Notes: a model not told the origin generated them from the sequence alone. Shown: positions 23,739 to 32,700, numbered from the stretch's first letter. The stretch is 46,981 nucleotides of DNA from Macrostomum lignano (GCA_002269645.1 NIVC01004405.1:1-46981), one strand, 5' to 3'. A program made the numbers and translations.

Positions 23739-26700
23739 CTGGAATTGTGGCAAAGGTCGGTCAACTCACTTTGCTTGCAGGCAACTTGTCCATTGATTGA
23801 ATTTCTCTCGAAACCCAGAAACTAATTTTCAACAAAATAAATTCGATCTATACTACTAGAGTTTTTCACAAGTAGAAGATCTGAGCATCATCTGCGACCC
23901 TTACTGACCTGGATTAGCTCTCTGGATTTTTGCAAGGTTCGATTTTGGAGATTTTTGGCCTTTCTTTGGGTCGGGAAGGATGCAGAATACCTGAAGTGGT
24001 TTGTTTATGGAGTGCTTTGAACATTTCTTCCGTAATTTAAGTTTAAAAATACAAATAAATAAGGTGATCAATTTGAATAATAAATCAAATGAATATTCTC
24101 AGGATTGTGGTCAGCCTGGAACACAGATACTAAAAAAACAAGTTGGGCCACTCAGGTATATAAATGAATACTTAAGTAAAACAGCTTTCTACTTTCAGTT
24201 CAGTAGCAAAGAAGAATACATAAGCTATTTTATAAAAATAAAGGCAGCTGAAATGACTTTGATAAGTTTAGAAGCCCAAGCTTGCAGGCGTAAACAACTT
24301 GCTAATTGGTTCAGCAGTAATGTACATTGGTCAGTCAACTGAAATGTACATGGCCGCTTTAGACTGGAATCCGAGAAAGGCAATAAAAATTGGGGCGGGG
24401 CGGGGTAGTGTGGAAAGGCCCGGTTGGAGGGTTTAAGCTGGGGGTAAGAGCCAAAAAATGAGCCTTGGCTTGTAAAATACATTATAAAATGCTTCTGTTA
24501 AACTTGCTACTGAATTGAAAGTAAGCTTGCAAATGTGCTGAGTGGCCCATCTGGTTATTCTAGTATCTGTGCCCTGGCGCTGACTCCAAGCACACAAGCG
24601 CACCAATACTGTACGCAAGCACGCACTTATACACATGCTCATTTTTTAATCGTTAGATATGTACACTTTCTGCACCTTGGAGGTTGGCCAGGGGTCGTGG
24701 TGCAAGAGAGCAGGAATTGGATATTTCTTACCTTGTCGCTGACGTCTACCACTGTCCTGCGGCTAGGGAAAGTGTACACGAACCGGCCGGATGCCTTCTT
24801 CTTCTTTGCCATTAGGCGGTTTTTATTTCTCAACTGGTAGATGCCGAGACAGATGATTCCGAAATGCTCGAGGGATCGGATGTACAGCTCTTCCCAGTAG
24901 ATTGTCTGAATGAGGTGCGGTTGAATGAACGGTTGGGATCAAATGTATCAGGGGCAAGGATGCGAGGTTGGGAATGGCATTCAAAACACGGCACAAACCT
25001 TGGAATTAAAAGAGTCGAACATCTCGCAAAGCGGCTTGTCTCGGATAGACAGTTGCGCAATTCTAAACGAATATGAAGTGCTGAGCAGCATCGCCCGTTC
25101 AATGTCCAACTCGGACGGCATTCCGACGTGAGAGCCGATAAAATTATCGACAGTCATTTGGTTGCTACCCTGGATGAGGGCTTGAAGAAACTGGGCAACC
25201 TCGGGACAGTGAAATGTTGCGCTGGCTAACGTGGCGAGCTGGGTGTCGCTAATCACCAGACCCTCGGCGAAGGCTTGGGTTCGAATAATGTCGGAGTGCT
25301 GGTAGTCCTGCGGGACGTGTAGAATTGGGTGGTTTTTAAGGAAAAAGCTAAAAGCCACTGCTAATTGGGTAAGAATCATACCCTGTCGCGCTCCTTCAGA
25401 TCGCTAAAGAATGAAGCCACCTGCGGACAGCTGAGTCGCACGGTCAGGTGGAACTTTTCCCTATAGTAGTATTCTCCCCGACGCCCGATGACTACGGCGC
25501 GAACGTTCTCGGCGCAGACCACAGCATCCGTGTCGGCCAGACCGAAGGCCTCCTGGCCGCGCATCTCGATCTCGCTGCTTCCGTTGCCGCCGTTGCCGCC
25601 GCCAGACTCGCCTTCGTCGTTGCCGCCTCCGCTGCCGCCGCCGCCGCCTCCAGATTGCGACGAGCCACCGCCGTTTCCTCCATTGCTACCGCTGCCGCCG
25701 CTGACTTTTAGTACGGTCACGGCGGACGCGACGTGGACCCGACAGCTGACCAGATGGTCGGTGAACATCCCGGAGCCCCGAACAAAGTAGACCTGAGTAA
25801 TGTCGTTTGGTTTTACCAGATAAGACACAATAAGAATCTGGAACACTTGCGGCACAGTTCAGAACTGTAGTTAGACTCACTTGGCGAAAATTTCGCACGT
25901 GTTTCCACTCGACGCTCGCCAAATTGTCGGCATCGCCTAGCACGACAACGTCGCGCAGCTGACTGGGATCAATCAGACGGCTGCGCAGCGGCAGCAGGAG
26001 AGCGGCCAGGCCGACAGGGTATGTTACATCGCCGAGGACACAGACGACTACGTGTCCAACCCACGGCACATCGGTGGCTTCCTCGATGTCAAGGAGGCGG
26101 CAGCGCCGGTTCGGCGCCCAGTGCAGGGTGCTGCTGATGTCTGCTATGGGCCGCCGGCTGCGCTCGTATCGCCAGGTGTCGGTGGCGCTCAGTGCCCCGT
26201 GGTGAGTAGACATGATGCCCAGCGCCGGGTCACCTCTGCCTTCTTCAATGTCGTGGCGGAATTTCTCTTCTAATTGGCGATCACCAACGCAGTTCGGCCG
26301 TAGGGCGATTTCCTCCCAGCGATGGTCTGAGAATGGAGAACCAAATTCACAAAGTTGTTGTTTACGTCTAACAACTAAACAAAGAATGGAAGTAAAAGAC
26401 TTACAAATATTCAGGTCGCTAGCTTCCTTCTGATGCTTTCCCTCCTTGCTGTCGCACAGCTCCAAGCCGACCAGTTCCGGATTGTTTTTACTGAACAAGG
26501 CGTTCTTCCGCATCTGTTTGTCGCGTAGGAGCTTCTCCGCCACCGACCCTGTTATGCATATTGAAATTTGCTGCTGTAGGAATACAGGATGGGAATCGGA
26601 GCACTGTAAAAGCACTTGTACACAGCACTTAAAGGCGCCATGCAATGGCTTTATCACAGTATTCATGCATATTTCTACTCGTATTAATACTCTTTCTATT

Positions 26701-29700: not shown

Positions 29701-32700
29701 GAAGTGAGAAAGTAAGTCTGCAAGTTGTGCGACACGTGTTCAACAAATTAGCATTAAAAGAGGCTATACGAGTACACAAAACGGCAGAGCTTACCCCGGC
29801 TACAACGATGCAGATCATGATGGTGAGCTGGCCCAGCGTAGTTTTGGGATATATGTCTCCATAGCCGACTGTGCTGGCCGTGATGATGAGCATGTAGAAA
29901 CTGTTGAAGAAGTCTAATGCCTTGCACGGCTCGAACACACGGGGGCCCATGAAAGTCCAGAAGTTGTCCAGATTTTCAACCTAACAAAGATTGCGCAAAG
30001 ATTTGGGCGTTTTTAGTTTGATGATTTCCTTGAGACTCATTAGGTATCCTAGAAGCAGAAATATTGCTATTAGTTTTCATGCTTATTATCGCGGCCGGTA
30101 CAGTCCGCTATGAAGGCATTGTCCCAAAAATACGCTGGGTCAGTGGTACTTGAAGTAGTCCGTTTGGGTCAGTGTGATGCAGTTTGGCAGACTCTTGTCT
30201 AGACTAAGTGATTGAGTGGGTTCTGGCATTATTCAAAGGTGAATTGCATCACTTTCAAAAGAAGTGAAACAAAGAGCAGTGAGATCTAGAATTGGAGAAA
30301 AAAACACGCACGAACAATGGTGAAGCAATATTCTCGTGAATTGTTGCTGAAAATTGTGCGCCAAAGTCGGAAAGATTTAGCGCTTAAGAAACAAACCAGC
30401 GATACTCATACAGCAGCACCAGAAGTAGTGAAGAACAGTTGACACCAGAAGCTCTGAAACAAATTCGTGACCTTTCCTAAAACAGGGTATCCGTAGCCCA
30501 GTGGTCTGGCGCGGCGCTCTCATGTGTCAGCGGCCCAGGCTCGATTCCAAGTGCAGTCACATTAATTTGGGGCTAAATTAGAATCTCGGCTTGGGTCACT
30601 GCCCCAAGGCACAGTGGTGTACATGCTTAACGATAAATGCAGTTAGGGCCGCTGTACACTCCTGTGTGAGTGTGTGCCTGTGCATGGGACTGCGTACGTA
30701 TCCGCGCGCTTGTGTGCCTGCTCAGGTGAGTCGGCCAAATGGGGAGTAATGCCTCTCTCCGGTTGTGTGACAATGCCATTAATATAAGTATCCCTGCTCC
30801 TAATAAAAATTCCCTACAGTGACACCGGAAGCTCTAAAGAAAATTCTGTGACTTATACCAGCAGGACTGCGAGACGTCGGCAAAACAGCTTTTTCTGACC
30901 CTAAAAAGCATTACGAAGGAAAAGGAAAATATGCAGTAAAAAAACAAATACATTACTCACAAGGTGAATCAGTCCTGCCAGAGTTGACCAGAAGCAGATC
31001 ATGCCAATAATAAGCGATATCAGGCTTTTTGAAGTTGCCGAGGATATTAGGTTGAAGGAAATAAGCACCTCTTTGATGGCTGCTAGGCGAATAGCTCGAA
31101 GGAAGTTGAAAACTAAAGTAAAAAAGACATTTTATATTGCCTGTCAGTTAAATATTGCTTACGCATGCAGATTCTGAAAATAAGAGGTATTAAGCTAAGC
31201 GTCACCTACCGAAACACCCGAAGCTTAAGCGTCACCTACCGAAACACCCGAAGCTTAAGCGTCACCTACCGAAACACCCGAAGCTTAAGCGTCACCTACC
31301 GAAACACCCGAAGCTTAAGCGTCACCTACCGAAACACCCGAAGCTTAAGCGTCACCTACTACAGAAACACCCGAAGCTTAAGCGTCACCTACCGAAACAC
31401 CCGAAGCTTAAGCGTCACCTACCGAAACACCCGAAGCTTAAGCGTCACCTACCGAAACACCCGAAGCTTAAGCGTCACCTACTACATAAACACCTGAAGC
31501 TTAAGCGTCTCCTACTACAGAAACACCCGAAGCTTAAGCGTCACCTACCGAAACACCCGAAGCTTAAGCGTCACCTACCGAAACACCCGAAGCTTAAGCG
31601 TCACCTACCGAAACACCCGAAGCTTAAGCGTCACCTACTACATAAACACCTGAAGCTTAAGCGTCTCCTACAGAAATACCCGAAGCTTAAGCGTCACCTA
31701 CTACAGAAACACCCGAAGCTTAAGCGTCACCTACCGAAACACCCGAAGCTTAAGCGTCACCTACTACAGAAATATCCGAAGCTTAAGCGTCACCTAGGGG
31801 GGCCGTAGCCCAGCGGTAGCGCAGCTGCTCTGGTGTGCCAGCGACCCAGGCTCGATTCCAAGTGCAGTCACATTAATTTGGGGCTGAATTGGAATCTCGG
31901 CTTGGCTCTGCTCGTGCAATTAACGGCCTTGAGAGCCAACCCCCCAAGGCGCAGTGAAGTGTACATGCCTAACGATAATATAAAGTTAGGGCTGCTGTAC
32001 ACTCTTGTCTGTAGGAAGACGCTTAAGCTTCGGGTATTTCGGTAGGTGACGCTTAAGCTTCGGGTGTTTCTGTAGGAGACGCTTAAGCTTTGGGTATTTC
32101 GGTAGTAGGTGACGCTTAATTTTTTATTTTTTTACTAGAGGCAGGGGGGTTGTGTGCACCCTGGCGCACTTTAAGCAACATTGTGTGCCTGCGTACGTAT
32201 CCGCGCGCTTGTATGCCTGCTCAGGGGAGTCGGCGGAATGGGCAGTAATGCCTCTCGCCGGTTGTGTGCCTATGTTGCTTAAAGTGTGCCAGGGTGCACA
32301 CAACCCCCCTGCCTCTAATAAAAAAAAAAATTAAGCGTCACCTACTACCGAAATACCCAAAGCTTAAGCGTCTCCTACAGAAACACCCAAAGCTTAAGCG
32401 TCACCTACCGAAATACCCGAAGCTTAAGCGTCTCCTACAGAAACACCCGAAGCTTAAGCGCCATCTACTACAGAAACACCCGAAGCTTAGGCGTCTCCTA
32501 CAGAAACACCCGAAGCTTAAGCGTCACCTACCGAAATACCCGAAGCTTAAGCGTCTCCTACAGAAACACCCGAAGCTTAAGCGCCATCTACTACAGAAAC
32601 ACCCGAAGCTTAGGCGTCTCCTACAGAAACACCCGAAGCTTAGGCGGCACCTACTACATAAACACCCAAAGCTGAGCGTTATCTACCGAAGAACTTAAAG

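Follow-up and report, generated by a model that had tools for sequence, protein, structure and literature searches.

What remains of a BK channel when its pore, voltage sensor and gating ring are kept and the residues that bind its divalent ligands are replaced? BK channels are the textbook case of the integration of voltage, Ca2+ and Mg2+ through one gating ring, and the question is raised by BOX15_Mlig020928g3, a gene of the flatworm Macrostomum lignano whose product is publicly annotated as an uncharacterised 'hypothetical protein'. It lies on a 46,981-bp contig (GCA_002269645.1, NIVC01004405.1:1-46981) that bears gene copy g3 (PAA47575.1); this whole stretch of DNA is the window analysed here, and all positions are counted from its first letter. 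A sequence-only reading of the window had proposed a channel of BK/Slo1 architecture that has lost essentially all classical Ca2+ and Mg2+ sensors and is gated by another ligand. Here, we describe a computational analysis of the gene, its product, its genomic copies and its relatives. On sequence evidence it is rather probable that the gene encodes a functional, lineage-restricted member of the Slo (BK) family that would be opened mainly by voltage, be blind to Mg2+, show little or no activation by Ca2+, and have a conductance below that of BK.

By its sequence the protein is a Slo1-type channel, with segments S0-S6, a TVGYGD filter, two RCK domains and a Slowpoke_C domain. Among all PDB chains its best matches are Aplysia Slo1 (E = 1e-81) and human Slo1 (1e-80); the solved Slo1 gating rings 3naf, 3mt5 and 3u6n are matched at about 1e-42 to 1e-44. 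The match weakens to 1e-36 for the human Slo3 gating ring, and no Slo2 chain does better than 5e-19. Matches to the Pfam domains Ion_trans, Ion_trans_2, Slo-like_RCK (two, 88.5 bits), BK_channel_a (68.1 bits) and Slowpoke_C (53.1 bits) are all above the curated cut-offs. An E-value of 1e-81 to solved Slo1 structures, together with five Pfam Slo domains above their cut-offs, lies far beyond chance. The filter stands in a pore domain of the six-transmembrane type and the two RCK domains are accompanied by the BK_channel_a segment, as is expected of the Slo family, and hydrophobic residues 91-109 align to the human S0, as is expected of Slo1. About 90 residues with four N-X-S/T sequons precede S0, which fits the N-terminus predicted from sequence to be extracellular. 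The PDB matches, the Pfam domains and the S0 alignment thus bear out the architecture, with S0 and TVGYGD, that had been read from the sequence. The membrane features are as follows.

33596-33652, minus strand: S0 helix VISMASFWGLLFLLQVLPM, residues 91-109, recognised by a hydropathy maximum of 1.85 and by its alignment with the human helix.
31069-31112, minus strand: S4 voltage sensor FNFLRAIRLAAIKE, with N250, R253, R256 and E262 at the positions of R207, R210, R213 and E219 of Slo1.
29855-29872, minus strand: K+ selectivity filter TVGYGD.
29682-29717, minus strand: cytoplasmic S6 end VPALIS, with A369 and S372 at the positions of E321 and E324.

The voltage-sensor residues D153, R167, R210, R213 and E219 are kept, as is D362. 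Their partner D186 has become E229 and R207 in S4 has become N250; the charged S4 and partner residues characteristic of Slo1 (R210, R213, D153, R167, D186, E219) are thus present, bar D186E. Because the filter, S6, and the charged S4 with its partners are intact, a K+-selective, depolarisation-activated channel is predicted. The acidic ring of the inner vestibule is gone, E321 and E324 being replaced by A369 and S372. Both the retention of R210 and R213 beside R207N, recovered by phmmer, MAFFT and a Slo1 profile, and the change of the vestibule ring to Ala and Ser had been noted before and are seen again in our alignments. From Slo1 mutagenesis, loss of the E321/E324 ring should reduce outward conductance, and by this analogy a conductance below the >200 pS characteristic of BK is predicted.

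Residues were assigned against human Slo1 residues 19-969, rebuilt from the PDB alignment, in which 24 landmark residues match their published numbers. Four alignments are in agreement: phmmer to the PDB, MAFFT with 10 Slo1-type proteins, MAFFT with 20 family members, and a profile hidden Markov model. The profile and the count of invariant positions were made from 16 non-redundant canonical Slo1 proteins (<85% identity), and the Slo1 ligands of the calcium bowl and of the RCK1 Ca2+ site follow published work (PMC5677106). The regions that correspond to the divalent sensors of Slo1 are these.

28534-28575, minus strand: N-lobe of RCK1 from T416 to K429, with a six-residue insertion after T416.
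27310-27481, minus strand: C-lobe part of the RCK1 Ca2+ site, with S575/T576 and T600.
28363-28371, minus strand: R452-V-R454 replacing Q397-V-E399, fixed positive charges at the former Mg2+ site.
28213-28215, minus strand: L504 in place of N449, the bowl ligand from the neighbouring subunit.
25290-25411, minus strand: calcium bowl equivalent FFSDLKERDR/DYQHSD, residues 1035-1050, split at the exon 15/16 junction by intron 15 (25308-25381).

Both acidic ligands of the RCK1 Ca2+ site and all four Mg2+ ligands are lost. In RCK1, D367 is replaced by T416 and E535, with high posterior probability, by T600, and M513 and R514 in the same region by S575 and T576; the high-affinity Ca2+ site that D367 and E535 form in Slo1 is therefore missing. 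At the Mg2+ site (D99, N172, E374 and E399 in Slo1), D99 has become V139, N172 has become A215 and E399 has become R454, and the adjoining Q397 has become R452. The equivalent of E374 is ambiguous because of the six-residue insertion, being N423 by MAFFT and the profile and K429 by phmmer; the acid is gone in both cases. Nine of the positions discussed here (D99, R207, E321, D367, E374, N449, M513, R514 and E535) are invariant in 16/16 canonical Slo1 proteins, as are bowl positions 892, 894, 895, 897, 898 and 900, while N172 is not invariant and E399 only partly so. Since these positions do not vary across the 16 proteins, the departures are extraordinary for the family. The four alignments uphold the earlier assignments D367T, M513S/R514T and E399R. 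E535 had been paired with Phe, which is in fact the residue next to T600, and E374 with Lys, where the loss of the acid stands and the lysine is given by phmmer only.

The poly-Asp bowl (DQDDDDDPD) of Slo1 is represented here by LKERDRDYQH, and its partner N449 by Leu. In the bowl equivalent FFSDLKERDRDYQHSD five acidic residues stand beside three basic ones and one His; its net charge is -2, where Slo1 has -8, and six of the eight bowl acids are lost. Judged from the sequence, the bowl is degenerate, dismantled but not basic as had been claimed, and a weak remnant may persist. TBLASTN with five canonical Slo1 proteins found the exons of the gene model only, and no other acidic cluster occurs in any minus-strand frame of the gene; an alternative exon restoring an acidic bowl is thus lacking from it. 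A Slo2-like Na+ motif, DxRxxH, was considered in the bowl loop and dropped, as D-R-D-Y-Q-H does not fit it. That essentially all sensors have been lost accordingly holds for the RCK1 and Mg2+ sites and less surely for the bowl, where two aspartates may survive at essential positions.

Is a gene so altered still functional? Hand splicing, checked against the annotated protein, gives 19 exons on the minus strand and a 3,870-nt coding sequence for 1,289 residues in an uninterrupted frame, and so bears out the intact 3.9-kb frame over 19 exons seen by the sequence-only reading.

23566-34225, minus strand: the divergent Slo1-type gene BOX15_Mlig020928g3, with ATG at 34225 and stop at 23566.
34225-34005, 33701-33458, 33260-33199, 33105-33003 and 32899-32788, minus strand: exons 1-5.
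31112-30961, 29980-29795, 29717-29623, 28645-28517 and 28420-28162, minus strand: exons 6-10.
27640-27455, 27360-26979, 26548-26405, 26326-25881 and 25792-25382, minus strand: exons 11-15.
25307-24999, 24905-24732, 23990-23909 and 23738-23566, minus strand: exons 16-19.
34005-34225, minus strand: exon 1, encoding the N-terminal extension before S0 with its four N-X-S/T sequons, presumably extracellular.

The span first assigned to the channel, 24999-29717, coincides exactly with exons 8-16 and is not the whole gene; S0, S4 and the filter, cited with it, lie outside it at 29795-33701. All introns are GT-AG, bar the GC-AG intron 2. The splice model was corrected against P0009 (PAA70256.1, 'hypothetical protein BOX15_Mlig020928g1, partial [Macrostomum lignano]'), found by similarity, from which two single-residue indels (a Lys and a Gly) and two substitutions set it apart; P0009 also has 18 additional N-terminal residues.

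Three near-identical copies of the gene exist, g3 here and g1 and g2 on two other contigs of GCA_002269645.1. In both other copies all 19 exons are open, at 97-100% nucleotide identity, and the splice sites are intact. Each pair of copies differs at 21-25 synonymous versus 2-4 non-synonymous sites, corresponding to a synonymous divergence (dS) of 0.025-0.029, a non-synonymous divergence (dN) of 0.0007-0.0013 and a dN/dS of 0.02-0.05 among the three copies. The deficit of non-synonymous changes is significant (binomial P 1e-10 to 1e-14), the divergence of short introns (1.8-3.1%) is about equal to dS, and the amino-acid differences between copies leave the sensor positions untouched. With exons intact in three copies and dN/dS at 0.02-0.05, the gene is functional and under strong purifying selection in its sensor-poor state, in line with the earlier impression that it looks functional. 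The gene models of this series (the Mlig_3_7 annotation) are presumably transcript-derived. That the locus is a duplicate in decay, or a functionless product of faulty annotation or assembly, might be suspected from the extreme divergence from Slo1 (about 25% identity), from the lack of an orthologue elsewhere in a search with exon 10, and from one public model of the locus, P0010, which is clearly wrong. Three copies that keep 19 open exons and their splice sites at such a dN/dS (P <= 1e-10) leave that explanation practically no probability, and we consider it effectively refuted. The P0010 model (UniRef A0A1I8IKR0, from the sister locus) translates an intronic 30-bp minisatellite as KSHKFSIGNS repeats and has a scrambled RCK2; it is an annotation artefact rather than a variant channel.

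To which Slo lineage does the protein belong? It is 24-27% identical to canonical Slo1, where bilaterian Slo1 proteins are 53-72% identical among themselves and the human Slo1 and Slo3 rings 48%, and it is equidistant from Slo1 (25.5%) and Slo3 (25.6%). When exon 10 (86 residues) was run exhaustively by HMMER against 1.84 billion cluster representatives, only the protein's own cluster was found, the next match having 36% identity at E = 6e-6, and word-indexed protein searches returned the M. lignano copies and then ordinary Slo1; the statement that it has no close relative covers exon 10 and these word-indexed searches. In a neighbour-joining tree of 532 gating-ring columns with 300 bootstraps, for which the human Slo3 ring (4hpf) and chicken Slo2.2 (5u70) were taken from PDB alignments, six Slo1 proteins form a clade (95%) that is joined to Slo3 (97%). 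Immediately outside them, on a long branch, stands the flatworm protein, which joins Slo1, Slo3 and a further protein, P0026, in 58% of bootstraps. It groups with Slo2 in 0/300 bootstraps and is sister to human Slo3 in 1%, and it falls in neither the bilaterian Slo1, the vertebrate Slo3 nor the Slo2 clade; clustering within a known, characterised clade is not seen, nor is the Slo2-like character once ascribed to the bowl borne out. Because a distance method is prone to long-branch artefacts, a fast-evolving Slo1 duplicate and an older paralogue are not separable by this tree.

P0026, an NCBI protein of 1,076 residues from a 7.1-kb contig, is itself a divergent Slo1-side protein, 34% identical to human Slo1, and branches between the flatworm protein and Slo1 plus Slo3. 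It carries R213W, E321T, E374H and E399Q, and keeps D367, E535 and much of the bowl.

The introns speak for a shared ancestry with bilaterian Slo1. Four of the 18 match introns of a mite Slo1 gene, which has 17, in both exact position and phase, and a fifth is off by no more than one column, where 0.1 coincidences would be expected by chance (P = 3e-6); the comparison is with this one Slo1 gene and has no intron-bearing Slo2 gene as a control. The Slo2-like gene of the sponge Oopsacas minuta (JAKMXF010000266.1) is a single uninterrupted open reading frame of 1,577 residues with no introns. Slo3 is a vertebrate duplicate of Slo1 that arose in early vertebrates, and a survey of invertebrate genomes found Slo1 only (PMC5337896). 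Likeness of the flatworm protein to Slo3 is therefore convergent, and its origin independent of Slo3, which had been proposed before, is supported by this vertebrate birth (PMC5337896) and by the 1% of bootstraps in which the two are sisters.

How would such a channel gate? We propose that it opens mainly by depolarisation. Insensitivity to Mg2+ would be expected, all four Mg2+ ligands being gone; in mouse Slo1 the loss of any one of the four abolishes Mg2+ sensitivity (PMC5677106). The RCK1 Ca2+ site would be removed through the loss of D367 and E535, and activation by Ca2+ would be little or none, at most a weak bowl-type remnant acting via D1043 and D1045. R452 and R454 (positions 397 and 399), together with K or N at 374, would place fixed positive charge where Slo1 holds Mg2+, and this charge may permanently mimic bound Mg2+ via R213 and shift activation to more negative voltages, much as bound Mg2+ or the mutation Q397R activates Slo1 electrostatically through R213 (PMC5677106). 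It is by analogy with Slo1 mutagenesis that we infer both Ca2+ independence and a lower conductance. A more specific version, which we put forward tentatively, is that the protein is an invertebrate's independently evolved second fast-diverging Slo1-type channel, a divalent-blind flatworm counterpart of Slo3 in which built-in arginines (Q397R, E399R) would act on R213 and gating would be by voltage only.

Several points weigh against a channel that is mainly voltage-opened and blind to divalent ions. D1043 and D1045 fall opposite hD895 and hD897 (mouse D898 and D900) in every alignment. Of the bowl's side chains these two are the ones that Ca2+ binding requires, and two further ligands are backbone carbonyls (PMC5677106); Ca2+ sensitivity may therefore persist. 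In solved Slo1 structures residue 397 lies further from R213 than functional studies had predicted (PMC5677106), which makes the Mg2+-mimic idea speculative. Predictions from point mutants of Slo1 may not transfer at about 25% identity, and the identifier Mlig020928 was not found by an expression search of literature main texts and of the supplements of M. lignano papers. Finally, the gene could be an extra paralogue or the sole Slo1-type gene of M. lignano: a bryozoan Slo1 query retrieved no M. lignano protein among the best 120 of 8,000 matches, and an early transcriptome table lists M. lignano transcripts with best human hits KCNMA1, KCNU1, KCNT1 and KCNT2 (PMC3447372).

The first of these points could mean that the channel is still activated by Ca2+, perhaps with lower affinity, D1043, D1045 and backbone carbonyls forming a working site and only the RCK1 and Mg2+ sites being lost. 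The pairing of the two aspartates with the essential side chains by phmmer, MAFFT and the profile favours this, as does the finding that Slo1 channels with the bowl only retain roughly half of the Ca2+ shift (PMC5677106). The pairing is insecure, however. From the conserved Phe to Thr-Gln the loop has 21 residues, as it does in human Slo3, where Slo1 has 18, so that a three-residue gap must be placed, and aligners favour Asp on Asp by construction; the posterior probability at D1043 and D1045 is only 0.5-0.7; and R1042 and R1044 flank the two aspartates, beside the leucine at N449 and the reduced charge of the loop. We therefore regard a working Ca2+ site as rather unlikely.

The gating ring might instead have been retuned to some other intracellular ligand, such as protons, Na+/Cl- or a lipid, as its main physiological activator, an idea taken over from the sequence-only reading. 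Strong purifying selection on a large gating ring suggests a remaining role, Slo3 and the Marchantia channel MpBK2a show that bowl-less Slo channels can be pH-gated, and the bowl loop is equal in length to that of human Slo3. Yet no sequence feature indicates any particular ligand, which makes pH, anion or lipid gating pure conjecture; the protein has no affinity to Slo2 or Slo3 in the bootstraps; and assembly of the tetramer, coupling or the binding of partners may be what keeps the ring conserved. Gating by another ligand thus appears improbable as the main mode, and a purely voltage-gated channel is at least as likely.

The transcripts with best hits to four human Slo genes also suggest that several Slo-type genes are probably expressed in M. 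lignano (PMC3447372), and in Slo1 the Mg2+ site and the bowl/N449 contact lie between subunits (PMC5677106). The protein could then form no working homotetramer and instead join a canonical Slo1 or Slo2 of the worm as a modulatory subunit, adjusting the Ca2+ sensitivity of that channel. This is very improbable: filter, S6 and voltage sensor are complete and seemingly competent alone, and a protein only about 25% identical is unlikely to have kept interfaces that fit a canonical partner. A voltage-opened channel with its divalent sensors largely dismantled remains the reading that we favour.

If this reading is true, divalent sensing has been lost more than once in animal Slo1-type channels, where the survey of invertebrates had found Slo1 only (PMC5337896). 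The gene would then be a natural experiment, a whole Slo1 scaffold held under purifying selection with nearly every divalent ligand replaced and positive charges set in the place of Mg2+. Its expression would show what part of BK gating the scaffold supplies by itself, and it bears on whether two bowl aspartates alone bind Ca2+ and on whether charge at 397/399 replaces Mg2+. M. lignano is amenable to transgenesis. Loss of the sensors from the only Slo1-type channel of the animal would be more surprising than their loss from an extra paralogue.

Some further features of the gene and its surroundings were recorded.

25565-25708, minus strand: Gly/Ser/Asn-rich low-complexity insert in RCK2, in place of the disordered loop of Slo1.
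28684-29541: a 30-bp minisatellite of 28.5 copies that fills intron 8, non-coding, its length differing between gene copies.

The N-terminus may lie further upstream than the ATG at 34225: the frame is open over 34226-34321 to another in-frame ATG at 34321 (MPFWLVKLELLANYALHV...), and the annotated proteins, which are 5'-partial, continue through both the first ATG and this stretch. The GC donor of intron 2 (CTG/GCAAGT, 33433-33457) is the same in the annotated protein, and an in-frame GT donor 24 nt downstream would insert ASCFFVFL within S1. Exon 11 has a further in-frame AG acceptor 30 nt upstream (27641-27670), use of which would insert CHILATLKIQ, a peptide that aligns to 'AHLLNIPSW' of Slo1 after the conserved NK. 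This acceptor, which could serve as an alternative 3' splice site or be a mere remnant, is left unused in the P0009 model (copy g1). After RCK1, a cysteine pattern C-x2-C...C-x-C (CNYCK...CTC, 27019-27069) matches CKACH...CGC of Slo1, and CNYCK is without the His of the CKACH motif, which we take to be the heme-binding site of Slo1.

Intronic arrays of 23-bp and 30-bp minisatellites and (CAGA)n/(TCTG)n lie at 27697-28086, 28684-29541, 31192-31796, 32331-32654, 33746-33939 and 34556-34875. Across the three copies intron 5 measures 1675, 4169 and 576 bp and intron 10 measures 521, 448 and 2933 bp, with exons about 99% identical. Long minisatellite arrays, with repeat units of 19, 25, 24, 42 and 15 bp, dominate the 5' half of the contig together with a polypyrimidine tract some 900 bp long, and these stretches at 5865-6787, 7393-8580, 9217-10144, 17177-18256, 18733-20165 and 20792-21220 yield spurious long open reading frames. 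Two neighbouring genes are on the same strand, one for a beta-1,4-galactosyltransferase-like protein (Glyco_transf_7N and 7C, 35431-37286, minus strand) and one for a large protein with many thrombospondin type-1 repeats and fibronectin type-II domains (40468-43765, minus strand).

Slo channels without the bowl are already known from Slo3 and from plant BK, and the present case, as judged by sequence, is limited to one species. With Slo1/BK (KCNMA1, slowpoke, SLO-1) the flatworm protein shares the domain order S0-S6, TVGYGD, RCK1, RCK2 and Slowpoke_C and at least four intron positions, but it is without R207, N449, the RCK1 and Mg2+ ligands, the poly-Asp bowl and the E321/E324 ring. Slo2 (KCNT1/2, Slack/Slick) is likewise a tandem-RCK K+ channel without a poly-Asp bowl; it has neither S0 nor a charged S4, whereas the flatworm protein has both. 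Slo3 (KCNU1) is the pH-gated sperm channel of vertebrates. Like the flatworm protein it is of Slo1 type and a fast-evolving branch, lacks the poly-Asp bowl, has a bowl loop of 21 residues (F to TQ/ST), and has D367 and E535 replaced (K/K in human Slo3, T/T here), but it keeps E374 and N449, neither of which is kept in the flatworm protein. In MpBK2a of Marchantia polymorpha the Ca2+ residues are absent, and in experiments the channel is insensitive to Ca2+, Mg2+ and Na+, is gated by voltage and pH, and has a conductance of about 80 pS (bioRxiv 10.1101/2021.06.01.446568). Compared by description only, it resembles the flatworm protein in being of Slo type and in not conserving the residues that bind Ca2+ and Mg2+; it differs in belonging to a plant lineage rather than to the Slo1 side of animal genes, and pH sensitivity is a feature of MpBK2a. 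MpBK2a is the best functional precedent for the behaviour predicted here, that of a Slo channel opened by voltage in which divalent ions have little or no part.

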